Assembly (NCBI GenBank): GCA_001643675.2
Contig: LSRY02000033.1
Span: forward strand, 868,001-932,000
Length of the DNA stretch: 64,000 nt
Direction: 5' to 3'
DNA from: Monocercomonoides exilis PA203
Lineage: Eukaryota; Protista; Preaxostyla
This document shows, piece after piece, positions 3,546 through 64,000 of this stretch. Position 1 is the stretch's first letter; each line of letters starts with the position of its first letter. A model generated the notes under the pieces. The model did not search any database and had not been told where the DNA came from. It saw only the letters and a program-made list of their open reading frames with translations. The position numbers and the translations under genes are program-made.

Positions 3546-4558
3546 CGTATGTAATTATGAACGCTTGATGCCCTCACGTTGATGTAAAGAAAGGAAATTT
3601 CAATCGTGCTTCGCTATATTTACATTATTTAATAGTTTATGTTAATGTCATTATTGTATCGAAGTAGTTTTTTTGTTCGAACTGCCGCTACATCGCGATT
3701 ATAATACATTAGCGTATTATAAGTGGATTCTATTGCAAGTTCAACAATTTCTATGTTTTGCTATATTCGTTATTTATGGCTTTTATACCATAACTTGCTT
3801 GTGACAGGCTGTTACGACATGTATTGGCAGGTCATTTTCTGTCAATTTGTTGACGACAAAAGCATCTTACAATGTTCTTTCTTGCTGAGTTTAGAATAGC
3901 GTCATTTGCGTGAGTGCATTCTTGTGTCGATGGCATTATCTATAAACATTTTTGTGTTTTTGGACGTGTGTAATATTTTTTCATTTTCCAAAAGAATGCC
4001 TCACCGATGATGCTTTTTTCTGAATAATTGGCAGGTTGCTTGCACGATGTTTTTTTTCACTTTAATTAATCATCTAATTTGTTTTGATGGTATAAAGTAT
4101 ATTTTTACTGTTGTTACAGTTTTTGTTACAGTTGTATCTTACCTTAGCTTTTTTACACCCTTTGCTTTTCCTTAAATATTGGTTGAGTTGTGGCGCTCTT
4201 TTTGAATGTTTTCAGTTTATTTTATTTCCATGCTACTGACTTTGTACAAGTTTTCGTTTGGTTTTTTACTTGTTGAAAGTGATTTGTTTTCACGTATTTT
4301 TATTTATTCATTCCGAGTTTTTCCGTTAAGTTTTATTTTGCTTTTATTTATATTATTTTAATTTATTTGTTCATTTTTATTTTGATTTTATTGTTAACAT
4401 CTTTTCTCTTCCTTTCCTAAAAAATACATAAATCACACATTCAAAATCTTCTTGTTCTTTTTGCATGTTACAGAAAATATTACAAAAAAGAAAATTTATG
4501 TTCAGAAATGAAACACAATAACACAAGTGAAATGAACGGAAAAGATGAAAGAGAGTTT

Positions 4559-5199
4559 TCACATCAAAATGGAGATTTGCCTGCTCATTTGTTGGTGCCA
4601 TTCCATTTCATATAACAATAGTGAAAATTGCTCGCGAAGAATTTCTGATTCAAGCCGAAAATGAAAATGATTCTGAAGAATGTATCCTTCAATTGTCTTT
4701 CCAAAGATGGCTTGCACAAAAATTGTTGCAAAGCCATACAATCCAAGTATAATAAGGCGAACATCAACAAACCTGAACAAAAATAAGCATTTTCAAGAAA
4801 AAAATAAAAAGAGTTGCAAACAGCGTTAGTAATACACTTATTATCATCATGGCAATTCCGTAAATTGACACAGCCTTATTTACGTCCTTTTCTTTTAATA
4901 ATTTTTGGAATCTAGGTTCCATGAGGAGAATCGTTGTCGAATACTGCAAGATGTTGCTTGTAGTATATTTTCGCATCTTTTCACTTGCTATTATTTTTCT
5001 AAAATTAAACAAGAAATATCTACTGAAATAACATACTTTTACCATATTTCTTCTGCCACAGCTCAGATGAAATGATTTCCGCTTTATTTCCAAGCTCCCT
5101 CGGTCTTAAATTTAGAGCTTTTCTCAAAAATTCTTTCCCCTTTGGGCTTTTAAGCGGAGGAATTACCGGGGCAGACGAACGAGATAATTCTTTTTTCAT
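4559..5199 (-). CDS. Hypothetical ~180-aa protein with two predicted transmembrane segments
   Basis: Exons 5199-5037, 4987-4822 and 4772-4559 join in frame via gtatgt..tag and gtttgc..cag introns. Hydrophobic stretches are AVSIYGIAMMIISVLLTLFV and LIILGLYGFATIFVQAIF. No family recognised. Confidence 0.6.
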
Positions 5200-5343
5200 T
5201 TAATAAAAGTAAAGGGCCAATATTCTGAACTTTGGAATTGTGTGATCTAACTGATCCAATTGTTTCGCCCAGTATGAGACACGCTTTGCTTTTGATCGAG
5301 CAGTTAAGCTTATTGTATTTAAAATATTTTAATATTCTTTAGA

Positions 5344-6627
5344 ATGCCACACACTCCACATAATCTCCAAAAACGTTTGGCTGCTTCTGTCATGAACTGC
5401 GGTATTCGCCGCGTATGGCTTGACCCAACCGAAATGGGACATATTACCATGGCCAATTCACGTTTGCACAGTTTATTTAGTGTTATTATACTTTATTTTT
5501 ACACCTTTATTCAGGTCACAACGTGAGAAAGATGATTCATGATGGTCTGATCATCAGAAAACCAACTCACGCTCCATCACGCACAAGAATTCGCAAGAGG
5601 GTTTATTATTATTATTTGAAATCGAATGTTTTTAATCTTTTAAACAATCCAATTTTATTGAAAAACATTACAGTTGGAAGCAAAGAAGAAGGGAAGACAT
5701 ACAGGAATTGGTAAACGTCGTGGTACACGCGAGGCCAGACTTAACAGCAAAGTTTTGTGGATGAGACGTATCCGTGTTCTTCGTCGTTTCCTCCAAAGAT
5801 ACAGAGATGCTAGAAAGATCGACAAACACTTATATCATGACCTGTATCTTAAAATCAAGGGTAATGTTTTTAAGAACAAGGTTTGTGACAATAAGCATTT
5901 CATACGAACCTGAAAACAATTTTTTCTTTCATGTTTTATTTTATTGTTACAATTTCTTTTTTCATAGAGAGTACTTCTTGAACACGTCATAAAGGCCAAA
6001 ACAGAGGCACAAAAGAGAAAGAGCGAAAAAGAACAAAACGATGCACTTCGCGCAAAGAATGCCGCAATCAAGGCAAAGAGAATGCAAAAAGCTGCAAAAA
6101 TGGACGGTATGGTTTCAATTGCTGAAGAAAAGGTTCAAACTGGAAAAGCTGCCAAGAAAGCAGAAAAGAAAGATGTCAAGAAAGTCGAGAAGAAAGTCGA
6201 GAAGAAAGAGGAAAAGCCTGTTGAAAAGAAAGTTGAAAAGAAAATTGAAAAGAAAGAAACCAAGCCTGTTGAAAAGAAGGAAGCAAAGCCAGCTGAAAAG
6301 AAAGTTGAGAAAAAAGTTGAGAAAAAAGTTGAGAAGAAAGATGAGAAGCCAGCACCAAAAGCAGCTGCCAAACCAGCACCAAAGAAAGAAGAAAAACCAG
6401 CACCAAAGAAGGAAGAGAAGCCAGCACCTAAAAAGGAAGTGAAAGCAGCACCAAAGAAAGAAGAGAAACCAGTAGCAAAGAAAGAAGAAAAAGCTGCTCC
6501 AAAGAAAGAACAGAAACCAGCACCAAAGAAAGAGGAAAAGCCAGCACCAGCAAAGGCACAAAAGCCAGCAGCAAAAACAGCAACAAAGCCAGCACCCAAA
6601 CAAGCTGCGAAAAAAACAGGAAAGTAG
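5344..6627 (+). CDS. RPL19: 60S ribosomal protein L19 (eL19) with long Lys/Glu/Ala/Pro repeat tail, ~356 aa
   Basis: Motifs [68 protein letters not shown]. Introns 5462-5514, 5601-5673, 5881-5967. Probable 5'-UTR intron ~5303-5342. Confidence 0.97.
6160..6615 (+). repeat. Degenerate coding tandem repeats (KKVEK and KPAPKKEE units) in the RPL19 tail
   Basis: Repeated gaaaagaaagtt and ccagcaccaaagaaagaagaaaaa-like units are visible in the DNA. Confidence 0.85.
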
Positions 6628-44448: not shown

Positions 44449-47265
44449 TCACGTGAACTTTCTCCTGTAGAGCAAATCAAAGCAGCAGATCTCGCCCAGA
44501 TAGCCCCTGGCGCCCTTGTTGTTGGAGTGGAGCATCGCATAGAAGGAGTCGTCGAAGCCTTCTTCCTCCAGCTCTGTCAGCACCAGCCAGCGGAAGAACC
44601 CTTCTTTGCTCCACACGCCGTTGATCAGGATCACTGCCTTCTCCATCACCATCTCCAGCTCCATGTTCCGCCACTTGCTCAGGTCGCATATCGTATGCGC
44701 CACAGCCGAGATGACATGGTTCGACAGCAGAATAAGCACATCCTGTTCGCCTGCCTCTCTCTTTTCTCGGTCTGCCGGGCGCTCCATCTGCTTCTCTCGC
44801 TCTGTCTGAGGCAGCGGAGGCAGCTTCTGGTTGATGATGGTGTGGAACAGGTTGATGACACCGATCTGGACGAAGCCTGTGGACGGGAGCTGATTGGGAA
44901 GGATGTAGGGGAGGGTGGAGACAGAGCTGTTGGAGTGATGAGGAGAGGAGGAGGGGAAACAAGAAGAGAGTGGGAATCCTGATGGTGGCACTGATGAAGA
45001 TGAAGATGAAGATGATGCAGATGAGGATGAAGCAGAGACAGAGGCAGAAGCAGAAGCAGACTCAGGTTGCATAACAGGATGTGCTTGAAACGGAAGAACG
45101 ACTTTTGGAGAGTCTTCGTCTTCGCTACCAGTCTTCTTCGGCTTTGGCAGAATTGTATTTGGACGATACTTATACAGCTCACCATCGCTCTCTTCGTCTG
45201 AATCCTTCTCTTTCTCATCATCATCTTCATCCTCATCATCATCGCTTGAAGCAACCAGACGTGTCTCCATCACAGACTCTGTCAGCATCTCCTTCAGCCT
45301 GTCCAAAAATCCTGGGTATGTCAAGAAACCTGGGTGAGGCAGCATGCTCATCAGCTTCAGCGTGTGCAGGCATCGTATCTTCATCCACTCATCTTTCTGC
45401 CTCAGGAACCGCTTGTCAATTCCAGGAATCTTCAGAAAACGGCTTTTTCTTTTCATCTTTTTGACATTCTTCTTCTTCTTTTCTGGTTTTCCATGACTCA
45501 TCTTCCCTTCCTCTTGCATCTTCTCCTCTTTCCTCTTCTTCTTTTCTGCTTTTCTCCTCCGCTCGGCAATCATCTCGTCTCTCTTTCTTGCTTTGTCCAG
45601 CCGCTGCTTCCTCTTTTCCTCCCACTTCTTCATCTTCTGGTTGTACTTCTCTACTCTCAGTGCTTCCTCAGCCTCAGCCTCGCCAATCTTCTTTTCCATC
45701 ACCTTCACCCGCTTCTCCCTTCTTTCCTTTGCTGCCTCTTCTTCTTTTGCCTCCTCTTCGTCTTCTTCCTCCCTCTCTCTCTGCAGCTTCTCATCTTCTT
45801 CCTTGTATTTGTCTTTATCTTTCTTTCCTCCAAACAGCTTTGCCATAAATCCCTTTGACTTTGCTGCCTCTTCTCTTTTCTTCGCAATGATTTCGTCTTC
45901 TATTTTCCTCCGCTCCATCATCTCTTCGTGTTTTTTGTCGCGTTCTGCTTTTTCTTTTTCTTCTCTTTCGTTCAGCTGCCTCTCCATCAGCGCCCTCAAA
46001 TCAGCAATCTCTTTCAGCGCCAGCGTCCTTCTCTCCGTCTCAACCTCCACCAGCTCCTGCCTCTCCTCTTCTTCCGCCGCTTCTGCTTCTGCATCAATCT
46101 TTTCTGCCTGCGCTTCTTCTTCTTCTCTCCTTTTTCTGATGGCTATTTCTGGGTCCACACCCAATGCCTGTGCAAGCAGAGGAGTTATATCCAAATACTT
46201 CGTCATCAGCTTCATATCCTGAACGGTCTCTTCATAGCCAGTCCGGAAGAACGTCAAAAGACATCCCAGACAGAAAGGGGAGACATAGGGAATGGGCTCA
46301 ACTTGGTCTGTTGTGATTTTTGAGGGAGTTGCATATGAATGAAATGATGCCACAAGAGATGACATATCTAATGTTGTGTCGGTCATCTGCGCAATCCATT
46401 TTCGAAACTTTGTGGTAATAATACGCATCACATCTTTCAAAAGCATTTCATGTCTATTGTCTAATATGCAAACGTTATTAATGTTTTTTTTCATGCAAAG
46501 TTGAGTTAAGTATTTTAAAAAATATAAAAATTCTTAAAAATAGAAATAAACACATACGAGTTTCTTCTCCAATGAAATTCATCGTGACAAATGTCTTATC
46601 TTGAAAGTCTTGTTCCTCTGCATTTTTTGGAATAGTGTTCAATTGTTCCAGAACAACTTTCGTAAAATCTCTCTTCATCTTGTTTTCCAATTCATGACGT
46701 TTATACATGTTCATTGTTGTGAAAAGTGCTTCTGTATTATGATAAACATGAGCTAATTCCTGCAAAATATGAAGAGGTTTCATCCATATCATTGATTGGT
46801 CAAGCACGTTGCTAACTTGCCAATCTGTAGCAAGAGCACCACGAAATGAGCACTCCTCCAAAACTTTCAGATACATTAAAGCATCTGGAGCATTAAACTT
46901 AGCTCGTTCAAGTATTTTCATTAAAGGAGGAGCAATGAGTTCTCGTACAAATTGGGGAAACATTGAAATTGGATATCTAAACATTAATTCCCGCAATCTT
47001 TCAAACAGCAATAATCGCTTTTCTTGATCCTTTTCTTTAAGAACAGATGTGAGAGTTTCTGAAAGCATTGTTAAAAACGAATGATATTCTATAACAAAAT
47101 TAAAAATAAAGTTTAACCTCCAATTCTTTCGAATGGATGTGGAAGTGGTAATTCTGTTGCATCTTCCTCAATAGAAGGTGTACCTTGTGGATTAGGAGCC
47201 ATTTCATGGCCTTTTGGAGGAGGAGGCAACGGCTGTAATTGACCAATAGGGAGATATCTGGTCAT
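44449..47265 (-). CDS. Hypothetical helical protein with central Glu/Lys/Arg coiled-coil insertion, ~900 aa
   Basis: Exons 47265-47118, 47088-~46558 and ~46460-44449 join in frame. The first intron is only 29 nt. No family assigned. Confidence 0.75.
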
Positions 47266-48101: not shown

Positions 48102-49523
48102 ATGTCAATTCCTACTGCTCCACCATTGATTCAAGAGACACATAAAATAAAAGAGTCTTCTTCTCCAAATGAAAAAGATGAAAAACGTGATTTTAAACAA
48201 CAGCAACAACCTACAAAAAAACTGTCACCATTTTTTCAACGTGCAATAGTTTGATAATAATATTTTTTTAGAAATTTTATTTTTTGAATTTTTTGAATGA
48301 ATTTAAATATTAGAATTCGTTACAGTGGAGAAAGAGTAGATGCAGAGATGGATGCTTTTCATTTTTGTTGAAAGACGAAAAAAAGAAGAAGGAGGCAGAA
48401 ATTGTCATAAAGCAAGTTCCACTATGCGAAATGGCTGGCCTTGGAACAGGAGGTCTTGAATTTTTTCTCCAACAAAAATGTGTTCGAAATTTAAAATTTT
48501 TGAATAGCAACTGTTTGGGATGCGGCTATTGCGCTTGCTCGGTGGTTTGAATTAATTGCGAATACTGAAACAAAAAGTTTTTCTTTTTCACCTCCAATCA
48601 AGCAAAGCGATGCATTGATGAAAGAAATCGATAAACAAGCAACAATAACACCAACCACCGTACCAATGACGTCATCATTTAAATTTTCATTTTCATTTAA
48701 CAATCAAAGTCGTTGGATTGAAATAGGATCAGGACATAGTTTTATTGGGATTGTTGCGAAAATTTTGGGATGTGGAAAAGTTGTTTGTACTGATCTTGAC
48801 TTTTTGCAGTTTTTAATGAAGGATAATATTGCTTCAAATCAACACTTATGGACAAATAAAGAAGACGAATTAACAGTTAGTCCATCAAATATCAAGTCAG
48901 AAAGTGACGACGTCTCTTGTACAGTTTTTGATTGGAATGCAGACGTTATTCCTGAGAATATTGTTTCTCATTCACTCACAAAATCACCGTATCAGCTTGT
49001 TATTGTGTGTGAATGCTTATATGCAAACGTCCCGCACCATTTGCTTTTAAACGCTCTGCTTTTACTTACAGAACCACCAAACTTCAAACGAGTTCATATT
49101 GACAATACTGATGAATGCAAGCATAGCAATGAAGATAATATCACAGAAAAGGAAACTGGAGCAAGTGCTTCAACTGGAACATTAAATTGTAAGGATGAGG
49201 GTTTGACGTCCTCTTCAACATCTTCATCTGCTACCCCTTCTGATTCTTCGACTCCTCTTCAATTAACTTCTTCATCATCGCTTACAACAACAGATTCATC
49301 GTCTCATCACATCATTAATTATCCTCCATCCTCTTTTAACCCTCCTTTCATTCTTATTGTCTATGAGCATCGCAATTCCATCGTCTTTTCTGATTTTATG
49401 AAATCAGCGTTACCGTATTTTGATGTACTTATGCTTCCGTATGAGGTTCAACATCCATTTTATCAAACAAACGATATATTTTACTATGCAATGAGAAGAA
49501 AAACTATTGATGATTCTCTTTGA
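48102..49523 (+). CDS. Methyltransferase family 16 (METTL21-like) protein-lysine methyltransferase
   Basis: GLGTGATVWDAAIALARW (across an intron), motif I IEIGSGHSFIG, VVCTD, FDW, motif II VCECLY, and YEHR. Two introns. Confidence 0.88.
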
Positions 49524-49977: not shown

Positions 49978-52900
49978 ATGGCTTCATCTTGCCAAAAGAA
50001 AAATATTGTGGACGATGAAGCAGATCCAGGAAAGCATGATCGTTCATTTCTTGGTAGAGTTAAACGATTTCTTCATTTGAGCTCTCTTGGATTAGAAATA
50101 AGCAAGCTTTCATATAGTTTGTTTTCAGATAATTCATTTTACTCTATTTTAATTCATAATTTATCCGCTACAAAACGCGATATTTAAAACATTATTATTT
50201 GGACTGATTTCAGTTGCAAATCATCTTCACAAGCAATTGATCCTTCAATCATCGATTTTGGAGATATCCGATGAGCAACATCTTGAAATCATTTGGAGAG
50301 GGTGCGAACTTTTGAAAAGATGTGAGAAAAATTCGAATTTTGCCAAGTATATTCTGGCAAGTATGGAAATCGTTCTGAAATCTGCTTCATGTCCAATTCT
50401 GCCAAGTACTTTGCCTCCATTGCTTATTAAAACGTTAGTTTTGGATTGCGATGTTAAATCTCTTCCTCAGTCTTGTCGTAGACCAACATACGAAATATTA
50501 CATGTGATTTTTTCATTATACGCAAAAGGTTACAATCTCTTTTTGATATAATTTTTAACTTTATGTGCTCCATTCTTTTATATTCATTGTCATTCATTTT
50601 TTACAGATTTGGTTGCGTCTTGTCCAACGTGGATTACCAAAATAACTGAATCTCTTGGAACAGAAAAAGAGACTAAGTTGATGCTTTCGTTCATCAGAAT
50701 AATGCTAATAATTGTTTGGAATCCACTGTTCAAAACAGAAGTTGAAAAGCACAGCGTTCTTCTTTTTGATTCGTTGAAGCCATACTTTCCAATTCCACAA
50801 TCCAAATTTTGTCACAAAAAGAAGACACACACTGAGCCGACGTATGTTTCTCTTCCTTCTTCTGTGACCCATCCGTCGCATCCACTCACTCCTCCATCTG
50901 CCTCGAGAGATGCACCCCAATCACAAGAGCCATCTTCATCTCTGCAAACAGCAAGTTCCAACTCCTCTGCTTCTGAAAAGGGCGCTGTCTCGACATCTCC
51001 TTCACCCGATGGCTCAATCATATCCAGCGATCAAGCACCCCAAAAGCACAGTGGACCAGACCCCTTTCTTCCGCTGTACCATCCCTCGCAGTACCGCCGC
51101 CAGCTGCTGTCGTCCTCCGAAAGCGGAGGAGAAGGCGCAGAGGACGAGTCGCCGAAGGAGAAGAAGCAGCCGCCCACGTATCGCACGCTGAATGTCACGC
51201 TGCTCAGAGCGCTGACTGCAACGCCTGTGTTTCTTCCGCTGGCAGCCGACCTGGTTTTGGAGAAGATGACGACGTGCTACACACAAGTGAAGCGCGACTG
51301 CCTGCTGCTGCTGTCGATCTTCTTCATCCAGTCCATCCAGCACCCCTTCTTCCACCCGCTCATGAACGTGATGGGAGGCAGCCTTCATTCTGTGCTCAAC
51401 AGACAGCTGACTCCTTCCTCTGCCCACTCCTCTTCCTTCGTCGTGTCTGCTCTCCAGTCGCCCTTTCTGCAGCAATCACAGCCACAGTTGAGGATGCTCC
51501 AGCTCCCAACAGCTGCTCAGCTGCACAGCCGACACCCGCCGATGGAGATGGTCGAAGACGACTTGTTCTTCATCCCGCCATTTGTGAGTGACTTCAGCAG
51601 ACTCAGAGACACGTCTACATCAAAAGTGTTCTACTCATTCATCTCTCCTGAACTGTTCAGAAACCCTTCTCATTTATCATCATCATCATCATCATCTTCT
51701 TCTTCTTCCTCTTCACCCTCCTCTTCTTCTGACCTCTCCTCTCAAAACCCCATCAACTGCAACTCCCCACAGCCAGACATCAACACACCCAACTGGCACA
51801 CGATGCTTATCCCTTCCCCTTCTGCCTCTCCTTCTTCTGACCCACTCCAGGCATCTCCCAAGCCTTCTGCCTCAATCGCCTTCTCTTTGCTTCAACAGAA
51901 CGAGTCACCTAAGCCAAAGAATGCGCAACAGTCGCCTCTTGCCTCTGCTTCTGAGATGGATATGCCTTCATTCCCTTTCACTCAATCGAAGAACGAAACT
52001 TCAACTCAACAAAAGACATCATCATCATCATCATCCTTTTCTTCTTCTTCTTCCTCTTCCATCTTTCCTCGCCGTCTCATCCCCACCTACACGCCAAAGA
52101 CTCCCTTCCCCTTTGGCTTCTCCCTTGTGCCCATCCACAGCAAGCTGTCTGCCCTGTGGGCAGTTATGTTGAGGGACATTGTGCAGACGCTCAACAACGA
52201 CGTGTTGAACGAGGCGCTGCTCTGCCTGCGGATTCTGCTCTTTGCGCTGGAGGTGGAAGGAGAGAGGGAGAGGATGAAGGAGATGTGGGTGCTGCTTATG
52301 AAGAAGAGAAGGCTCATGCGAAAGAGAATGTCTGAGAGGAAGTTGGCACTGATGCAGCCATCAACTTCATCATCATCATCTTCTTCCTCTTCATCATCTT
52401 CTTCTCCTTTCTCTTTTTCTTCTTCCATTCGCTCACCTCCTCTTTCTCCAAAGGCGATCGTGAAGACTTCTTCTCTTCCCCTTTCTTTCCCTCCGATTTC
52501 GCAGTTTCAGCTTCCGCCTCTCACACCTCCTTCTTTTCTGCCTTCTTCTTCCTCTCCTTCTGCTTCTGGCGTTCTTCAACAGTCTTCACGTACTCCATCT
52601 TCTCCAAATGCTACGTTTCCTATCACTTCTTCTTCATCATCATCATCCTCCTCCTCCTCTTCTTCTTCCTTTGGATTGCCAACTTCTCCTTTCTCTTCTC
52701 CTCAAAACTCATCTCATCAGAAGCAGCGCAGCAGTGCTAATCTTCGCTCCTTCTTTCTTCTCTCCTATCCTCTTGCCACATCTGCCTTCCTGCCATCGAT
52801 GCTGCCTTCTTCTGATTCTTCTTTCTCTCCCTCTCTTCCACCTCCTGATTATACACCTTCTTCTTCTTCTTCTTCTTCTTCTTCCACCTCATCCTCATCA

Positions 52901-54213
52901 TCATCATTTGTCCCCTCCTCCACCTCTCTCTCCTTCCTCTCTCTGATGTTCCATTCCTCTCTTCTCCATCTCCCCTCTCGCCTCCGCCTCATCCTCTCGC
53001 ACATCCTTGTCTTCCTCCTCCACTCCCTCCCCCAGAAGAACATGACACACGCCGCCCATTCCATTTTGAAGGCCATCTCAACTGCCTCTCCTTCCATCTG
53101 CCGTGCTGTTGTTGGCGCTGCTCTGCCGGCGCTGCTTCCGCTTTTGGTGAAAATCAAAGGAAAAAGGAAAGTGGAAGAGAGGGACGATGAGTGGAGACAC
53201 GCTGTGGCGATGGCGATGCTGCAGAAGGAGAAGGAGAGGATGAAGGAGACGGTGAATGAGGAGAAGGAGAAGGAAAAGGAGAAAGAAAAAGAAAAAGAAA
53301 AAGAGAAGTTGAATGGAGAAGCAGATCCATCGACAGAAGTGGAGATGAATGGCAACTCAGATGCCGAGTCAAGCACAGAAAGTGTCTCAAAGAAGAAGCA
53401 GGAGCCTTCTGCTAATCGTGTTGAGTGTTCTGATGAGCTGCCGAAGCCGAAGATTGTTGAAGAGGAGAAGATTGTTGACTGGAATGATCCTTATCTGCAG
53501 TTGGTGGATGGAGACAGAGAAGAAACAGGGCAGCCTATGAATTCATCACAAAGCAATGATAATCCACAAAACATTGCAAATACAAATCAATCATCTTCAT
53601 CATCATCATCATCTTCTTTCTCTTCTTCCACATGTCCTCCTCCATTCACCTTCCATTCCTCTGCTCCATTTGAGATCAATCTGCAGATTTTGGCTGTTGT
53701 TGTGGATTTATTGTCATCTCTTAGACAGACACACACCGTTCTCTCTCCATTCATCCCATGCAGAGTGTTCGCAGAGGAAATAGCAGAGATGGCGTCAGGG
53801 AAGAATAAGGAGAAGACAAAGAAGGATGAGAAAGAGAAAGAGAAGGAGAAAGAGAAGAAGGAAGAAGATAAAAAGAAAGAGAAAGAGGAGGAAGAAGAAG
53901 AAGAAGAGAAGAAAGAGCATAAGGGCATCGAAGCAAAGAAGATAGAGACATTATCACCCGTCATCCAAAGCACACAAAAACAGGAAAATTCACACGAAAT
54001 ATCTTGTCTTCACAAAAAGCACAGTGAAACATCTTCTTTCCGAAGGCCGGCCAAATCGTCTGCTTCGACAGCGTCTTCTCTTCTTTCTCTGATCAGAATA
54101 CTCACAAACCCTCCATGTCACCCGAAGATTATGTCAGATGTTGCTTCATTGAGTTATTCACACAGAAGAATGAGACTAAACATCGTATCAAATAACAAGG
54201 CATTTAGTATAAC

Positions 54214-54261
<48 letters not shown>

Positions 54262-54883
54262 TTCTTCTTCTTCTTCTTCTTCAAATTCTTCATCTTCTTC
54301 ATCTTCTTCATCTTCTTCATCTTCTTCATCTTCTTCATCTTCAGACTCTTCTTTAGTCCAAAAGAATGGAAGAAGAATGCGAAAGAATCCGACAGCGCTG
54401 CTTCCCTTTCACATCCTCCATTCGTTCTTCATTGCGCCCTTTGTGCACAAAAAGGAGAAGGAAAAGAAGAAGAAGAGGAAGCATAAGCATAGAAAATCAA
54501 AGAAAAGTCACTCAAAACAAAAGGAAGAGAAGTTATCTTTGGAAGAAGAAGGAAAGAGAACAAAAGTTGAAGCAGAAGAAGAAACAGAAACTGAGACAGA
54601 AACAGAAAGTGTGGCAGATGAAACAGAAGATGAACACTCAGAATGCTCTTCGAATGACAGCTCATCTTCATCAACATCATCATCTAATTCTTCTTCTTCT
54701 TCTTCTTCATCTTCTTCCTCTGGCTCTTCCTCCACATCTTTGTCTGCAGCAGAAGAAAAGAAAGAGAAGCTGACAGAACAAACAGCCAAAAAGGAGGAAA
54801 TTGTCATCCGATCTCCTGTTTTGAAGGGAGAAATGCCATCAACCTCAGCACAAGTCCTGAGCAGCCAACAAAATAAACATAAA

Positions 54884-54916
<33 letters not shown>

Positions 54917-57900
54917 TCATCTGACCATCCACACAGCATCAACTGTGCCTATGACGATGCACCCCCGCCTCCTCCTTTCTCTCTCATTCCTCTTCCTGAC
55001 CCTTTCCAGGCAACAGAATTCGACCTTCTTTGGGGACTGCCTGGCGAAAGCGAAGACATCGACATTTCTGTGCTGGAAGAATGGGCGCTGCTTGAAGGAG
55101 AGAAGCTGCAGAGAGAGAAAGAGAGGAAGAGAAGGAGAGAGGAAAGAGCTAAACAAGAGAAGGAGCAGCTGGATGGCTCTTCTTCTTCTTCTTCTTCTGC
55201 TTCTTCTGCTTCTGGTGACAGCAGCGGAGCTAATGAGGCGAATGGGATGGCACAAGGCTTGTTCGAAAACGAAGGTGGATTTGGGCTGTTTGAAGACACG
55301 CTTCCAGAGATAGTTCCATCGAACACAACAGAAAAGCATCCGAATGAGAGCGAAGACAAGACATCGAATGAAGACATTGGCCTTTTCTCAGAAGAAGCAG
55401 AGCAAATGAATCCTTCTTCTTCTTCCTCTTCCTCTTCAAAGGGAGTGGGTGCTTCTGGATTGGCTGCATCTGCTGTGACAGACACAGAGCCAGAGACAAA
55501 CACAGATGGAGCGACGGAACAGGAACAAGAGAAAGAGAAAGAGAAAAAGGAGTCAGATAAGAGCAATACACAGGAAATGTCACACGAATCAAAAAGAAAA
55601 CGAGAAAGAAGAGAGAAACGAGACAGAAAGAGACAACTTAAAATGTCTCGACTTGCTTCTTCTTCTTCTTCTTCTTCTTCTTCTTCTTCTCTTCCAACAG
55701 AACAATCAAAGACCCAAACAGACGCAGCATTTGCTGAGCTTTCGAGTGCTCCTTCGCCTCTTCCAGAGAATCTGTCAGATGAGCAGCCATTTGACGGAGA
55801 CGATGAACCAGATGGAGAAAGCAGGCTCAATGGAGCATCTTCTTCTTCCTCTGCCTCGAAGCATCGGCAGCAGCGCAGACAGAAGCTGACGAAGAAGCAG
55901 CGGAGAGACATGAAGATGAAGTCGTTGTTTAAGTTTATTAAGACGTCGGGTATTTGGAATGGAAATGGGGAAGAGAAGGAAGGGAAAGAGGGAGAGGGAG
56001 AAGGAGGAGAAGGAGGAGGAAATGAAGATGAGAGGAAAGAAGAGAAAGAATGGGGAAGGGAAGACGACGACGACAGCTTAACGGACGAGAGTGATGCAGA
56101 AGTTGATGGCGATGCAATTATTGAGACAATCGAAATGTTTGTGGAAGAAGAAGACGAAGAGGCAGAATTCGAAAGTATGCACAGAATCATTCACAAACAT
56201 CATCTTTTAACAAAATAAATATTTTTATTTTTTTCATTTTCTCTTTTTATGTTATTCTTTATTATGTCAATGTTATTACTCATTTATTTATTTATTTATT
56301 TATTTGTTTGTTTTTATCCTTTTTCAGTTCGTCTCTTCCCTCTTCGTGATGTGCTGATTGATCTGTTTATGACCCTCCTCAACCAGCCAATCATGCTTCT
56401 CGATGAAGAAACCCGTCTTTCTCTGACTCCTCTTCCGCCTTCCTCTCCACTCGACATCGAATCTTCTCTCTCTTCTTCCTCTGCCTCTTCTGCTGCTTCT
56501 GCTGCCTCTTCGTCCATCTCCTCCTCTCTCTCTTCTTCTCTCGTCAGAGCGTCCAACCCCTTTTTGTATGCGGAGCAGCGAAGAATGGACCAACAAGACG
56601 ATTTGCCTTCTTCTTCTTCTTCATTCTCATCATCATCATCATCCTCTTCCTCTTCCTCTTCTATTTCTTCTTCTTCTCAGCCCTTCTTCCCTGTTCCTCC
56701 TGCCTTCCATCGCCATTCCTCTCAGCTGCCTGTCTCTTTCCCTCTCTCTCCACTCGAATTCACCTCACACGGATTAGCTTTGCATGGCCTCTCCATCATC
56801 TTCTCTTGGATGACACCTCAACTCGGCGATTCTCCTTCTTTCGGAGCTTTTGCCTCTTCTTCTTCTTCTTCTCTTTCTTCGTCTGCTTCTCATATTTCTT
56901 GCCCCACTTCACCTTCTGCTGTTCAACCTTCTTTCACTTCGCCTTCTTTCTTTTCTCGTCCATCGGCCTCATCTCCTCACACATCTCCTTTCGTCTTTGA
57001 GCCTTCTCTTCATCGTTCTTCTTCTTCTTCCTCTTCCTCTTCTTCTTCCGTATTAACACCCACTTTATTGTCTGACCAGCATCTGTCTCCAACAACCCTT
57101 CGGCTCCTTCCCCCAATCCATCGCCCCATTTCTCCTCCACTCACCCCTCCTTCCTCTCTTCCCGCTGCCTCCTCTTCCTTCTCTTCTCCTTCTTCTCATC
57201 TCCAATCTTCCTTCTATCGCCCTTTCACTCGTTCCCGCTCTCCTCCTCCTGTCTCCCCTGGCCCAGCCACACCTCCTCTCTCTCCCTTCCTCTCTGCCTT
57301 CGATTCTTGTCTCTCTCCTTCTTCATTCTCCTTTGCACCAGACGCCCTTCCCTTTGGCGTGGGCATCCATCCTTCTTCTCTTCCGCCTTTCTTCTCGTCT
57401 TCTGAAGACAACCAGAACAATCTGCTGACAACTGACGTTGAGTCTCTTTTGCCTCTCGTGCTGGATCAGACAGACCTCGCCTTGTTCTTCCCGTCTCCTG
57501 TCTTGTCGCTCTTCTCTACACTCAACAACGACACGAGGAAAGAAATAGAGATGCTTGAGATGAAGGAGAAGGAAGAAATGGGCAAAGATGATGAGAAAGC
57601 AAAGGAAGGAGCAGAAAGCGATTTGACTGAAAAAATTGATAGTTCATCCATAGTTGTTTCAGACAATCAGAATAATGAAGCACTCACAAAGGCAGATGCA
57701 TCCACATCACAACGCATTTCTTCATCTGAACTTGACAAAGCCCAGCTGCAGCTGATGGAAGAATTTGGCATTGATGAAAGTGTGCTGAATTCAGTTCCTA
57801 TGAACTTCTCTCTTCCAACAGCGACTTTCTCACAAACTCTCATTTCTCCACACAACAAACAGTTCTCTTTCCTGTTTTTGACACGCAGCAAAGTGAAGTC

Positions 57901-60900
57901 TGTCTCCACTCAACTTCTGAGGCTGCGTGAAGTCTCAATGAATGTATCGATGTTCTCTCCATTGGCAGCCATCGCCCCCATCTCTCCGACAACCATGTCT
58001 CCTCAAACACGCTCACGGATGCTGTTCCCTCGCCCTCTTTCTCCTCCTCCTCCAACTATTTCATCAGCTTCTTCTTATTCATCATCATCATCATCTTCTT
58101 CTTCTTCTTCATCTTCGTTTTCATTGCCTTCTTCAAATTCTGCCTCATCTTTGTCTCCGCTGTGCTTACCAACAACACCTCCAATTACATCAACTTTACC
58201 TCCTCCATCCTCAATGTCACGCACATCTTCATTGACATCGTCTTCTTCCACACTCATCAACTCTGAGAATACAAACGATGCCTTCCAAATTGCACCTCCA
58301 TTCAACAGATCAACAAGCATAAACAGCGGAGTTGTTTCGCCTTCTGCTCTGTCAGCGTTTTCTTATTCTTCTGCTGAACGTCCATCAGCCGCTGGAATTA
58401 ACCATTCTACAAACATTTCTGGTTCGTCTTCTTCTTTTGCTATTGACAACAACAACAAGCTTGTTTCATCTGATGATTACTCAACACACGACGATGCACC
58501 ACATTCTCTTCAGCCAATTAAGCTTCCATCCGAAATGCGGTCACACGAAGGTAATGTCTTTTTGACTCTTCTTCGGCACATTTTCGAAGCGTCCTTGACA
58601 GATTCGTCGGATCTGCGGCGCAAACAGTGCTGGCTGTGTGTTTGTGAGTGTGCAGGGCTGATCAATGGCTTCTCGGGAGCAGATGCAAGAGAACAATCGC
58701 AGGCTGAGCTGAAGGAGAAGAGGGAGGAGTACGAAAGACGGAGATCGGGAAGGAAAGAGACAGAGCTGGAAAGCAGAAGCAAGAAGCAGAGAGAGGAAGA
58801 GAAGAGGAAGAAAGAAGGAGAAGAGGAATGGAAAGAAAGAACGGTATATTTTGAGGTGTATGATTTGTGCGAAGAGCTAAAGATAGTTGAAGGCTACCAA
58901 CAAGACGGTACACAACAGAATTTCGATGAAATCACATCGACATCAATTCCTTCAATTGGAAAGCTATCTCAAACGCCACGTGCAGATCAAGAATTCTCTT
59001 CACTCGATGCAGCAACAAAGAATCCGATGTATCACTTTTTGCGTGTTGTGTTCATTCCTTCGCTGTTTGGGCTGGTTGAAGCAATGACAGATGGCAACTT
59101 GTTGGATTGGAACACTTCTGAACGGAAAGAAAGAGGAATTGCAGCTCTTTTGAGAAGTGTCCTGTTCTGTGTGGAAGAGATAAGCGAAGAAGAGATCTGC
59201 AATTTGCTTGTTCTCAACAAAGAAGATGATTGCAATGAAAAACAAACAAGAATAAGACAAAAGTTTCCTCCGCCATTTGCTCTGCTTCCTCCAGCAGTCT
59301 TTTTGGAAAACATGTGCCTTCTCTGCTTTTGTCTTCCGTCGTTCTTTTCGCATTCCATTTTATTGCTTCTCATTCACACGTTGGCTTTTATATCACACAC
59401 ACAGATACTTCCATATTCCTCTCTGATAACCAGAGTTGCTTTGACAGATGCAATCACTACGCCTTTGCCAAAACTGAATATGAATGCCTTTCTGAATCAT
59501 TTGAACACATTTTCACTTCTTGTGCTGGAGAAAGAAAGCCGAATGGGACTTGATCTCAGAGCTAAAAGAAAAGCAATGAAGAAGCAAATGCAACAAAATA
59601 AGTCTGATAACAAAACTGATCCAGATTATGATGCCAGAGTTGAAGAGATTGAGTGGGCAATGACACACCCAACATGCTTTGAGGAGGAGAGCGATCTCAC
59701 TTTTGCATTCTTTGCATCAAGAGTTCTTTACCCGCACTTGCTTCAATCTGTTCTTCACTTATGCTTCACTTATCAAGCAAGCACTACCAATTCTCATGAG
59801 ACATCTGCTGCTAGTCAAATTCCTGTCTATCAATATCTGCCGAATGAGATTGTCGAAGCTATCTCCACATTTGCAACCATCTCTGGAAGTGTTCTGAGGA
59901 TGGAGCAAAAAACAGCTGATCCACTGCATTCAACGCCTGTGATATGCTTCATTCTACACATAATCAAATGGTGCTCACGCAACATGCAAACAGAGCAAGA
60001 CAAAGCAGAAGAGCCAGCTTTCAGCGATGTGAATGATTTGTGCTGTGCAATGGGAGACATGGTTGGCAAAGCAATCTTCAGATTTGCCCCAGGAGACGAT
60101 GTTTCTTCAACAGACGAACTCAGATTTGTCAGATGCTCTGCACTTTTGCTTCATCTTCTTAATGTTTGTCTTCCTCCGCTTTCGCTCCATAATTTGCTTG
60201 AGAAGGCACAAGACTCTGAAAACGACTATGTTCCGTATTTTGAATTGGAATTACTTCAAAAACGAGAAAAGGAGTGCGAGCCTTTCATGGCTGATGTCAC
60301 ACATTCCATCACGTTCCTTCTTTCTTCACTGAAAAACGCTTCACCAGAAAGAACAAGCAATTCAGCTTCAACCGACTCAGGCAGGATAAATACAATTCAA
60401 ATTAATGACTTGAATCTTTTGAATGAACTGACAACAAAAGTGATGAGCATATGGACGAAAAAGATTATCATGTTTTGTTCTCTTTGCGAGCATATCAGCA
60501 ACGGAGCTGAGTTCGCACAAATAATCAAACGATCCTTTGGCAGAGGAAAGCTGACTTGTGTGCTAACTTTCCCTGCAGAAGATTCCATCAGCAGTGTCAG
60601 CATTGTGGGCGAGTGGGACAATTGGAGCAGTAAGATTCCAATGGAACTTAATGCAACCAGGAATTTGTGGATGGCTGATTTGCTGGATGAGAAATTCAGT
60701 CTGTCAAATGCGCTGATTGAAGGGAAGAAATATCAGTTTAAGTTTGTGATCAACAAAAATGATTGGAGGGTGAACAATTCATATCAAATCGAAAAAGATG
60801 TGAACTGTAACACAAACAACACCAAAAAGATTGTATTTGATTTTGAGTCAATAAACGACACGGGGAAAACAAATGATTCACTTTTGTGGGAAGTGCTGAA

Positions 60901-63900
60901 TTCTCTCTTTGAGATGGCGCTGCCACTTCCAATAGACAGTACACTTTATGAAATCTTGCTTCCTTCTCAGCTTTCTTTCAAACATGCTGTGCCTTTCGAG
61001 GCATTTCTTGAGTCTGTTACACCATTTTCAGCAATTTCATCTGAAAATAAATCATTGCCCTTGCCTGAAAAACAACAAAAGGATAATAAATTAACAGAAT
61101 CTGATCAGTTTTCATTACACATCAATGAATTGTCATCTCGTCTCCATTCACTTGGCATTGTTCTTTCTTCGATTTCTTCAATGCGAAATATCGGCGATTT
61201 CTCATTTATCAGACTTTCGCATCTTATTGTTCTTCATGTGACATCTGCCATTCCACACTTGATCTGCAATTGCTTTAAGACACCGAATCATTACTCACAA
61301 GCATCACACAATTCATTTTCACCTTTCTCTTCTGAGGAAATGCATGGCGCTTTGTCTCGCTTCTTCCAACTCTTACTACCATCAGTGTCTTCTTTGCTTC
61401 AGAATACACTCGTTGGCACATTTGCTCCACGATGTGGACATCACAACACAAAAAGAAGTCCGCAATCCACTCCTAATTCATATGTTCAGTCCAAAGACAA
61501 AGTGACCCCAACACAAAAAGCGCAAACTCCTCCAACAACACCTCCACATGTTTATTCTCCCACCGCTACATCAACAGCAGCTCATTCGTTTTCTCCTTCG
61601 CTCATGTCATTTGGGTCGCTAACTCTGTCACCTTCTCCAACTCCACCGCATCCTTTCAGTTCATCTCCTTCACCAGCATTCACTCCAACTCCTGTTCCTA
61701 CGCCTTCTCCTTCTCCATTTGATATCCAAAACAGCTTTGACTCAGACGATCCTATCGAATCTGCAATGATGCTTTTCTTGTCAATTGTATCTCCTTTCCT
61801 AAGCGCATTGAATGAGCTCGTACCAAATAGAACAGCGATTCAGCAGGATTCACAGGCTTCGTTCACAACAAATGATGAGGCAGTTTCGTGGCTGATTGCT
61901 TTCATCTGGAAGATTCATGCACTGTTCACACACGCCATAGACACATTCCTTCTGACTGGAGAGTTCCGTCCATCTCCTCCAATCTCTCTTTCTCTTCCTG
62001 CTTCTCATTCGATCCATCCATTTTCAAACACTTTCGATTTTTGCTCTGCAACAGATTCTGCTAACTTTGCATTAAATTCGAATGGATCAAAAGGCATTTC
62101 ATCGCCAAGTGCTCCAGCTGAGCGCGGAATCATCCTTCCTCGAAAGCTACAAAGGCAGCAGGCACAGTCTAATGTGGTGCACAATTCTGGACTGCTTTCT
62201 TCTCTTCTAACTTTCAGAATGTATGCTGACAGGATTGAGTACATTCCGTCTGTTTCTCTATTTGCGGAGGAAGAGGAAGAGGAAGAGGAGGCGGAAGAAG
62301 AGGAACAAAATGAAGATCATAAGGCGCAGGAATGTAATGGAGGAGAATCTTCTCAAGAACAAAGCAATATCAGTCAACAAGGCGAGAGTGAAATCAACAA
62401 CAATTCATCTTCACATGCTCCGTCTTCAATAATTTCTGATTCAATGCCAATAAATCTGTTTTATCAACCTCCACCACCTTCATTAATGCAATCCAAATTT
62501 GTTCCACCAACATTTCCTCTTCATTGGCATTCATCTTATGAGACTGATATTGGCAAGCAGACACAATCTCGTCACACATCCTCCTTTATGACTGTTGCAT
62601 CATTGACTTCTCCAAGAGGCATCAATTCTTTGTCGAATGATTCTGCTCAGCGCTTTGCACAGAGCAGCAGCTTTATTCCACCAAAGAACATGAGATGCAT
62701 TGCGCTTCTTCCTCGGTTCATACTCGAAAATCTGTTTATCACAACTCTGAACATCCTCAAAGTTGCATTCAACGAAAAAGCAAATGCTGACGATACTTCT
62801 GTTGAGCAGTCAGCCTCTTCTTGTACTTCATCTGCTTCATCTTCCATTCATAACAACACTGCTTGTATCTCTTCGCACTCTTGCTCTATTTCTCAAGCAA
62901 CAAATTGCGATATGACTAATGCCAAGACTTTTTCACAGCATCTGCTAACCACTTCGAGCCCTCTTTTGCTTTGTCTTCTCAGCATCGTTTGCAGCGGAAC
63001 TCTCCCAACAGTTCTTTATGAACCAATTGCAGCACTTTTCCATGCAAAGATCATCAACCCTCGCAATCCATCGCTTGCGCTGCCTGAACATTACACAGAA
63101 AAAGGATGGAGTGGCTCTGCGTCAGACTCAAAAGGAAAGAACGATGCTTTCTCTTTGCTGGGTGGCACATCAGAAGTGGAATCCTCTCTTGCATTGGCAT
63201 CGTTGGCTCTGCTGCACTCTGGTTCCGAACGTCTGGCGCTTTTGAATGACGATGGAGACGAGATGAGAAATGAGGTGGCAGAAAGCGACGGTTCGAACAT
63301 TTCTGAAGAGACGGATGCACAAACAGTCGGAAGCATTCATTCAGCATCAGGTGAAAGTGAATATAGAGGATTTGTTGAATTGAATGACGAGTTTGGATTT
63401 GGAGAAGGAGAAGTTGTTGAGGAAAACGAAGGGTCTGATGATGAACTTGACGAAGAAGATGGACTTTTGAACTATTCATCTCTTTTAAGTGGGACAAAAA
63501 CAACAACATTTGAAAGTACCTCCAAGCTGAACGAAAAAGAAAGCGCCAAACAGAAAAAAGCAGTGTTATTAAGAATGATACCGTTGCTCAATGCAACAAC
63601 AACGAATTCTTATTCTTCATCAGTGCTTATCAATCAACAGCAGTCGTTTTCGCATCATCCATCCAATAGTTTCACAAATCAATCATCTTATCATCCATTT
63701 GCTTTTGTGATGTCATCGCAGTTTCATCCTCGCTTGGTGCGTGTTACAAGAATGGTTCCTTCGATTGCAATTGCGTTATCGCCATGTGGAGCAATTGCTG
63801 CAGCAGAAGGCGAATCAATTACAGGAATAATTGTATCTGTGATTGAAGGACTCATCCAAAGACATCACACACATTTACAAACTTGTTCTTTATTATTATT

Positions 63901-64000
63901 ATCATCTTCTTCTTCTTCATCTTCATCTTCATCTTCATCTTTGACAGAAGCATCAACCAACTTTGTTAGTTGTGTTTTAGAAGGACTGAGCTGTTTGTGC
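49978..64000 (+). CDS. MMS19: Giant MMS19/MET18-like CIA targeting-complex scaffold (>4,500 aa, runs off right edge) with internal CBM48-like domain
   Basis: Exons 49978-50116, 50214-50528, 50607-56174 and 56328->64000. The last is absent from the track because no stop is reached; I spot-checked its frame. MMS19_N-like motifs occur in order: VKSLPQSCRRPTYEIL, GTEKETKLML, LFDSLKPYFPI, LLRALTATPVF..LVLEKM..VKRDCL. C-terminal-like blocks are CAGLIN, MRCIALLPRFILEN and LLSIVCSGTLPTVL. Confidence 0.72.
54212..54345 (+). repeat. (TCA)n/(TCT)n coding microsatellite encoding ~45 residues of almost pure Ser
   Basis: Seen directly. It is one of many poly-Ser tracts in the long exons. Confidence 0.9.

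Follow-up and report, generated by a model that had tools for sequence, protein, structure and literature searches.

The gene that starts at position 49978 of the 64,000-nucleotide stretch of Monocercomonoides exilis DNA analysed here (hereafter, the window) probably encodes, as judged from its sequence, the orthologue of MMS19/Met18 that has been reported as unidentified in oxymonads, in a highly inflated and divergent form. M. exilis serves as the reference organism for eukaryotes devoid of mitochondria. The original prediction, which had proposed this identity, also stated that MMS19 is often scored as not found in metamonad CIA inventories, and this holds for the oxymonads, in none of which MMS19 was identified by Vacek et al. 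2018 (PMC6231488), and for the CIA inventory of Monocercomonoides, which lists only Nbp35, Nar1, Cia1, and Cia2A/B (PMC6006210). Since an MMS19_N domain and a C-terminal docking motif are both found at this locus while MMS19 is listed as missing, the oxymonad protein has probably been concealed by very large insertions rather than lost. Orthology over the whole protein, a helical-repeat organization of its middle part, CIA2 binding, and a role in cluster delivery are what we infer from these elements.

The predicted gene comprises four exons (Table 1) and, as previously proposed, its last exon stays open to the edge of the window: the reading frame extends 147 bases further, in phase, and reaches a stop codon at window-equivalent 64148-64150 (C29:932148-932150). 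A local check of lengths and phases shows that the four exons join in phase into 4,593 codons, and 19% of the residues of the predicted protein are serines. In the forward frame whose codons start at positions equal to 2 modulo 3, the sequence is open over 50552-56215 and 56219-64000. Between 50607 and 64000, this coding frame contains one stop, located inside intron 3, and the other two forward frames contain 146 and 200. The three introns are all of the GT..AG type, with a G+C content of 18-28% compared to 36-49% for the exons. As the upstream gene ends at 49520, scant space is left for additional 5' exons.

Table 1. Features of the MMS19-like gene (window coordinates; those beyond 64000 are window-equivalent)
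Feature	Position	Strand	Description
MMS19-like gene	49978 to stop 64148-64150	+	Four exons; stop beyond the window edge
Exon 1 (predicted)	49978-50053	+	ATG + 25 codons + 1 base; GTAGAG donor at 50054; phase matches exon 2
Intron 1 (predicted)	50054-50213	+	160 nt, GT..AG, 27.5% G+C
Exon 2	50214-50528	+	First part of MMS19_N; contains SLPQSCRRPTY; RNA contigs cover 50401-50526
MMS19_N part 1	50315-50518	+	Profile 49-113; 13.3 bits, E 0.062, scanned alone
Intron 2	50529-50606	+	78 nt, GT..AG, 23% G+C; removed in RNA
Exon 3	50607-56174	+	5,568 nt; rest of MMS19_N, then Ser-rich and Glu/Lys-rich low-complexity sequence with a few helical islands
MMS19_N part 2	50630-50794	+	Profile 125-175, GTEKETKLM ... 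PYFPI; 15.1 bits, E 0.017 (50609-50800 alone)
Ser/Pro-rich insert in MMS19_N	50795-51151	+	~110 residues, between profile 175 and 180; RNA contig 50673-51665 spans it unbroken
MMS19_N part 3	51152-51319	+	Profile 180-235, LLRALTATPVF..LVLEKM..VKRDCLLLL; 25.6 bits, E 1.1e-5 (51125-51640 alone)
Intron 3 (predicted)	56175-56327	+	153 nt, in frame, GTATGC..TTTCAG, 18% G+C; holds the sole in-frame stop, 56216-56218
Exon 4	56328-64147	+	Extends past the window edge; helical islands, low-complexity spacers, CBM48 domain, MMS19-type C-terminal tail
AMPK1_CBM / CBM48 module, AMPK-beta type	60590-60832	+	Pfam PF16561, 33.6 bits vs cut-off 26.8, E 4.5e-8
Tail LGEKKKEIRRAAADTICRWSFVSN	64076-64147	+	MMS19-type C-terminus, end of exon 4

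The gene is transcribed, its intron 2 is spliced out, and the inserts are retained in the mRNA. Over 50001-60000, 0.83-0.85 of the sampled words are found in the RNA runs, and the 78-base GT..AG joint of intron 2 is present in the RNA contigs of all four runs. Exon 3 is covered by gap-free RNA contigs at 50673-51665, 51724-52005, 52067-52355, 52913-53214, 53316-53817, 55220-55647, and 55701-56174.

The identity of the protein is supported at its N-terminus by the MMS19_N domain (Pfam PF14500 / IPR029240), matched in the exon 3 ORF at 28.7 bits with an E-value of 1.2e-6, that is, only 2 bits above the curated cut-off of 26.7. When scanned apart, three pieces of this region match the profile in collinear order (Table 1), profile positions 1-48 and 236-262 being unmatched at the locus. 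The blocks SLPQSCRRPTY, GTEKETKLM, LLFDSLKPYFPI, and LLRALTATPVF..LVLEKM..VKRDCLLLL, on which the original prediction was built, all lie in order inside these matches. MMS19_N is also the sole Pfam family listed for each of the three N-terminal pieces, no better-scoring HEAT family being found there. In addition, a six-frame scan of the whole 82.3-Mb genome at E<=10 returned this locus (its 51152-51319 part) as the only MMS19_N match and revealed no separate canonical MMS19, bearing in mind that such an exon-by-exon scan may overlook a copy that is highly diverged or broken into many pieces. None of the three outcomes that had been named as refuting the original prediction was observed. Finally, the yeast residues R144, K187, and F217, which have been linked to client binding (PMC10728100), have plausible counterparts, in an alignment by eye, in the SCRRPTY, GTEKETK, and PYFPI stretches, respectively.

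At the opposite end of the protein, the last 24 residues carry an L-x2-KKK-x2-RR motif (LGEKKKEIRR), which starts 20 residues from the C-terminus, compared to 23 in human MMS19 and 24 in yeast Met18. Mutagenesis in human and yeast has established that this basic C-terminal block is needed for CIA2 binding (10.1101/2020.02.01.930206; PMC10728100). More precisely, K1007/K1008/R1009 and R1012/K1013 of the 1,030-residue human protein are required for CIAO2B binding (10.1101/2020.02.01.930206), and yeast L1005-R1020, including K1008, K1009, R1010, R1013, and K1014, stands out as the best-conserved block of the C-terminus (PMC10728100). The tail does not conserve a counterpart of yeast R1020. The broader pattern L-x2-[KR]3-x2-[KR]2 occurs five times in about 4,460 residues, and shuffling of the last 224 residues places it within the last 32 in about 1 per 10,000 trials (~1e-4).

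While the MMS19_N half of the profile check gave a match above the cut-off, the other half did not: MMS19_C (Pfam PF12460 / IPR024687, HEAT repeats 14-22) has no match at E<=10, whether whole ORFs or ten islands scanned apart are considered, nor at this locus in the six-frame genome scan. Of the later blocks that had been proposed, CAGLIN and LPRFI are present in the protein, with no profile backing. The MMS19_C miss means that sequence detection fails on a protein split by inserts; it does not prove the repeats to be absent. Elsewhere in the genome, MMS19_C yields four weak matches, all in other long ORFs; the two of these four loci that were examined are importin-beta-like ORFs matched near their N-terminus, and were rejected as candidates for a canonical second MMS19.

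The low-complexity spacers anticipated between the conserved blocks are real, with 14 serine runs of at least 8 residues, the longest reaching 23, and 5 charged runs of at least 10 residues. Low-complexity or disordered-looking sequence makes up about 60% of the protein, and ordered-looking sequence totals about 1,770 residues, which exceeds one entire MMS19. Exon 4 in addition hosts a CBM48 module, which the genome scan recovers at the same site with 35 bits. In the AMPK beta-subunit, such a module is part of a kinase subunit, whereas in this HEAT-repeat protein it is internal. At least 18 AMPK1_CBM loci are present in the genome, many within ORFs of more than 1,000 codons, and the paralogues of exon 4 found in the genome concern the CBM part only. 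By eye, the module keeps a Trp, a Lys, a Trp, and an Asn, which we take to be the sugar-binding positions. A working CBM48 could in principle tether Fe-S delivery to glycogen granules, and the disordered inserts could serve to bring in cytosolic SUF components or clients particular to this lineage, so that the adaptor would be a giant hub and its inflation functional rather than neutral; we regard this extension as quite improbable.

Single-sequence searches, made with separate exons or parts of them, brought up no relative, whether MMS19 or any other protein. In the PDB, four pieces (exon 2, the beginning of exon 3, and the C-terminal 700 and 73 aa) gave no MMS19 chain, only composition-driven noise. 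Word-indexed protein searches likewise gave no relative for the N-terminal region, for the ordered middle region, or for residues 924-2643 of exon 4, two of them being saturated by low-complexity words. Besides, phmmer with the last 798 residues returned 0 matches among 1.84 billion representative proteins, and scans of JGI metagenome contigs revealed no relatives. None of the sequence searches recovered a relative for the C-terminal two thirds. Among language-model neighbours in the ESM Atlas, the C-terminal piece is surrounded by general HEAT proteins, an MMS19 cluster appearing only at rank 4, and the middle piece has no MMS19 among its neighbours. Single-sequence AlphaFold2 models of the last 798 aa and of the ordered 477-aa segment in exon 4 are all-helical, with mean pLDDT values of 39.3 and 39.5 that are too poor for fold comparison. 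The nearest neighbours of the C-terminal piece, namely the importin-beta family, PSME4, Trm732, and GCN1 scaffolds, share a generic helical-repeat character with it, but all stay below their cut-offs and give no match in the N-terminal region; in exon 3, weak TPR_TNPO3_IPO13 and TPR_LAA1_C matches are both below the cut-off and outside that region.

Taken together, the features shared with human MMS19 and yeast Met18 are the MMS19_N domain and the order of its motifs, an all-helical prediction (from low-pLDDT models here), the basic motif about 20 residues from the C-terminus at what is the CIA2-binding site of those proteins, a single genomic copy, and the presence of CIA2 partners in the genome, CIA1 being reported for Monocercomonoides in PMC6006210. 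In contrast to these proteins of about 1,030 residues, the M. exilis one is about 4.5 times longer, is largely of low complexity (even inside MMS19_N), goes unmatched by the MMS19_C profile, does not keep the R1020 equivalent, contains an inserted CBM48, and finds no relative by single-sequence search. A parallel, compared by description, comes from Paratrimastix pyriformis, also a member of Preaxostyla, whose reported protein is recognisable by profile only in its N-terminal MMS19 domain (PMC6231488). In the cytosolic iron-sulfur (CIA) targeting complex, MMS19 is the HEAT-repeat adaptor through which clusters reach nuclear and cytosolic proteins, and in M. exilis this adaptor would have grown to about 4,593 residues through serine-rich and charged low-complexity inserts, placed between and inside its helical repeats, and the addition of one CBM48 module. 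By analogy with the human and yeast proteins, the MMS19_N repeats would bind client apoproteins and the last helical repeat would dock on CIA2 through its KKK-x2-RR patch, CIA2 bridging to CIA1, in such a way that [4Fe-4S] clusters originating from the cytosolic SUF system may be handed to the clients.

Other readings of the locus have to be considered. One of them is that the protein descends from MMS19 and kept its N-terminal domain, but lost its role in CIA targeting to become a giant lineage-specific scaffold, for instance a glycogen-associated one through its CBM48, the basic motif being a coincidence or a relic. The undetected MMS19_C, the orphan character of the C-terminal two thirds, and the inserted CBM48, a module that many other giant ORFs of M. 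exilis also contain, are in line with it, as are the N-terminal domain reported alone in Paratrimastix (PMC6231488) and the fact that several metamonads apparently manage without MMS19 (PMC6006210). However, the protein retains, equally far from its C-terminus, the residues which human and yeast mutagenesis showed to be needed for CIA2 binding, and its N-domain appears to retain those implicated in client binding. Furthermore, the function of the MMS19_C region is an open question even in yeast (PMC10728100), and the loss of its sequence signal does therefore not predict a loss of CIA function. We consider this loss of role unlikely.

A gene model joining two genes, with an MMS19_N gene of about 2,000 codons ending at the TAA at 56216-56218 and a separate gene starting inside exon 4, would account for the in-frame stop, and an in-frame ATG indeed occurs soon after 56328. 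RNA evidence cuts both ways here: the joint from 56174 to 56328 is not among the RNA contig joints listed, which leaves the intron 3 acceptor as predicted, and contig depth is nearly nil across 56201-56400, whereas the fit of an 837-nt RNA contig recovered in all four runs ends exactly at 56174, the predicted donor, ahead of the stop codon, as expected from a used splice donor. The 153-nt gap, which has GT..AG ends, 18% G+C, and a length divisible by three, moreover resembles the introns of this genome (PMC8767320), and exon 4 finishes with an MMS19-type tail whereas MMS19_N is situated in exons 2-3, all of which makes a split into two genes very improbable. As for an unrelated helical-repeat protein resembling MMS19 by chance, the narrow 2-bit margin of MMS19_N and the weak cross-matching of HEAT families, illustrated by MMS19_C in importin-like genes, are compatible with it. 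Nevertheless, the profile is matched collinearly by three pieces independent of one another, no other MMS19_N locus appears in the 82 Mb even at E<=10, the N-terminal region is matched by no other family, and an independent motif is present at the opposite end of the protein, so that a fortuitous resemblance is hardly credible.

Should the gene be the MMS19 orthologue, as we favour, the CIA targeting complex of M. exilis would be complete, with Cia1, Cia2, and MMS19, and the reported absence of MMS19 would mean that inserts and divergence had defeated its detection, which may likewise apply to other metamonads scored as lacking it. It would also illustrate strikingly how a conserved adaptor can accommodate about 2,800 inserted low-complexity residues and a foreign domain. 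The gene constitutes a concrete target for tagging, pull-down, and knock-down work. On the side of the partners, two CIA2 paralogues are present in the genome, in agreement with the published inventory (PMC6006210). The coding sequence of CIA2 is distributed over three or more exons, the largest of which encodes 82 aa.

The MMS19-like gene is best read as a highly inflated, divergent MMS19 orthologue, an identity that we consider probable. Pfam MMS19_N (PF14500) matched the exon 3 ORF with 28.7 bits (curated cut-off 26.7; E 1.2e-6), whereas MMS19_C (PF12460) had no match at E<=10, neither in the two long ORFs nor in ten ordered islands, each scanned separately, so that of the two Pfam domains that the original prediction proposed to search for, only the N-terminal one was recovered. 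Scanned separately, three pieces matched consecutive parts of the MMS19_N profile in the correct order, this being the sole family listed for each, and a Ser/Pro-rich insert of ~110 residues lies between profile positions 175 and 180. The short N-terminal blocks previously noticed all fall inside these three matches; in three of the blocks, alignment by eye gives plausible equivalents of yeast Met18 R144, K187, and F217, three residues at which mutation eliminates the binding of clients (PMC10728100). In the whole genome (82,301,135 bases, 101 contigs, six frames, E<=10), MMS19_N matched at this locus only.

The underlying frame is open on the + strand of the window (G000:C29:868001-932000) over 50552-56215 and again from 56219 to the window end, the stop codon being found 148-150 bases further when 10 kb more of the contig were read. 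Over 50607-64000, it contains one stop, compared to 146 and 200 in the other two + frames. The three introns have 18-28% G+C vs 36-49% for the exons, which fits the published introns of this genome (mean 119 bp, 27.6% G+C; PMC8767320). The in-phase union of the four exons amounts to 4,593 codons, with 18.9% serine; this joined sequence served for length, phase, and coordinates only, all searches having queried single exons. Frame, introns, and phase thereby all agree with the four-exon gene, open in its last exon to the window edge, that had been proposed. Upstream, a Methyltransf_16-type lysine methyltransferase gene (48504-49520, +; 47 bits) ends 457 bases before the ATG, and a 694-codon open frame at 44452-46533 (-) has no Pfam match at E<=0.01.

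Features of the MMS19-like gene (window positions) and of other loci in the M. exilis assembly (G000; C, its contigs; L, stretches cut from it)
Feature	Position	Strand	Remarks
Start codon ATG	49978	+	sequence
Intron 1	50054-50213 (160 nt)	+	GT..AG
Intron 2	50529-50606 (78 nt)	+	GT..AG
Intron 3	56175-56327 (153 nt)	+	GT..AG; contains the frame's single stop
MMS19_N piece	exon 2	+	profile 49-113; 13.3 bits, scanned alone
MMS19_N piece	50609-50800	+	profile 125-175; 15.1 bits, scanned alone
MMS19_N piece	51125-51640	+	profile 180-235; 25.6 bits, scanned alone
Importin-beta-like HEAT ORF, 1,090 codons	L009 (G000:C47:1994001-2004000) 2317-5586	-	weak MMS19_C match near N-terminus
Importin-beta-like HEAT ORF, 945 codons	L010 (G000:C1:1490001-1500000) 2944-5778	-	weak MMS19_C match near N-terminus
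CIA2 (DUF59/FeS_assembly_P) paralogue	L014 (G000:C42:693001-700000) ~3160-3730	-	three or more short exons
CIA2 (DUF59/FeS_assembly_P) paralogue	L015 (G000:C6:1047001-1054000) ~3538-4000	+	three or more short exons
PF16561 example	C19:937736-943179		genome profile scan
PF16561 example	C9:749301-749639		genome profile scan
PF16561 example	C14:2379844-2380149		genome profile scan
PF16561 example	C47:843505-843666		genome profile scan

Transcription was followed in four RNA-seq runs from one study, in which 0.83-0.85 of the words sampled from 50001-60000 are present and whose contigs were placed on 50401-56400. A joint removing exactly the 78 nt of intron 2, with its GT..AG ends, occurs in all four runs, and the material is therefore spliced RNA rather than contaminating DNA. 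Since RNA contigs cover the low-complexity parts of exon 3 without gaps or differences, including 50673-51665, the inserts are mRNA sequence rather than introns that escaped recognition. Each of the four runs has an 837-nt contig that matches 55701-56174, the fit breaking off precisely at the donor predicted for intron 3, which lies 42 bases ahead of the in-frame stop; the contig's other 329 letters have no assigned place, and RNA depth is almost nil over 56201-56400.

Across the genome, MMS19_C gave weak matches only (E 0.002-0.34), at four loci elsewhere. A second MMS19 at these loci was rejected: the two examined are importin-beta-like ORFs matched near their N-terminus, hence generic HEAT cross-matches, and such matches are a trap for MMS19 hunts with this profile. 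The MMS19_N and MMS19_C scans thus revealed no separate canonical MMS19; such a copy is what the original prediction had named as counting against it. No relative of any part of the protein emerged from a single-sequence search of PDB chains, nor of the protein from three word-indexed searches and two metagenome scans, nor of its last 798 residues from phmmer against 1.84 billion proteins. For the C-terminal part this silence says little, because the profile-recognised N-terminal domain is equally invisible to those searches. Language-model neighbours are generic helical-repeat families, with an MMS19 cluster at rank four for the C-terminal piece and none among the neighbours of the middle piece, and two single-sequence AlphaFold models are all-helical at a mean pLDDT of only ~39. 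In yeast Met18, the MMS19_C region (repeats 14-22) has no known function, and conservation is low in repeats 1 and 9-13 (PMC10728100).

At the other end, the protein finishes with LGEKKKEIRRAAADTICRWSFVSN. On MMS19, CIAO2B has the last HEAT-like repeat as its only binding site, and K1007/K1008/R1009 plus R1012/K1013 of the human protein (1,030 residues) are required for this binding (Kassube and Thoma, 10.1101/2020.02.01.930206); the most conserved C-terminal block of yeast Met18 is L1005-R1020, with K1008, K1009, R1010, R1013, K1014, and R1020 (PMC10728100). The M. exilis tail carries L-x2-KKK-x2-RR with spacing identical to both, starting 20 residues from the protein end vs 23 in human and 24 in yeast, but without an equivalent of yeast R1020. 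Five copies of the pattern [KR]3-x2-[KR]2 are found among ~4,460 residues; when the last 224 residues are shuffled, it falls within the last 32 in ~1 of 10,000 trials, and the protein's own motif density gives a chance nearer 0.03. Presumably, the Trp following the motif has the same offset as in human MMS19. As the tail had been picked out before its comparison with the published docking residues, the motif is supporting evidence rather than a blind test.

Under the orthologue reading, the protein would keep a client-binding N-domain and a CIA2-docking tail at its two ends. The MMS19_C profile having been tried without a match, membership of the family is incomplete by profile, and the gene is filed as a probable orthologue, not a proven member. 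An MMS19-derived scaffold working outside the CIA pathway would share the N-terminal matches and is a less likely alternative; the tail motif speaks against it. Two CIA2 genes were found on contigs C42 and C6, and they fit the Cia2A/B listed for Monocercomonoides, along with Nbp35, Nar1, and Cia1, in a 2018 review (PMC6006210). That the model mistakenly fuses two genes appears improbable. As no joint from the intron 3 donor onto the acceptor at 56328 is listed in the four runs on 50401-56400, the exon 3-exon 4 junction is predicted from where the donor lies, from the phase and composition of the intron, and from the frame being open. A chance resemblance to MMS19, finally, is the least credible explanation beside an above-cut-off domain in ordered pieces.

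For Giardia and Trichomonas, the same review scored MMS19 as missing. M. exilis, together with five further oxymonads, was screened by Vacek et al. (2018) using BLAST and HMMER with Pfam and custom models, and MMS19 was identified in none of the oxymonads (PMC6231488). MMS19 is unmentioned in the 2021 assembly paper (PMC8767320) and in the 2023 Preaxostyla genomics paper; an automatic InterPro label on the gene may already exist in public annotation. Both the Pfam and genome scans placed an above-cut-off AMPK1_CBM domain (PF16561) at 60590-60832, and the rest of the gene is without paralogues in this genome. PF16561 has 27 matches there, at no fewer than 18 loci, many inside very long ORFs (1,000-3,454 codons), one of which holds several copies; this AMPK-beta-type glycogen-binding CBM looks like a mobile, promiscuous insert in the oxymonad lineage.
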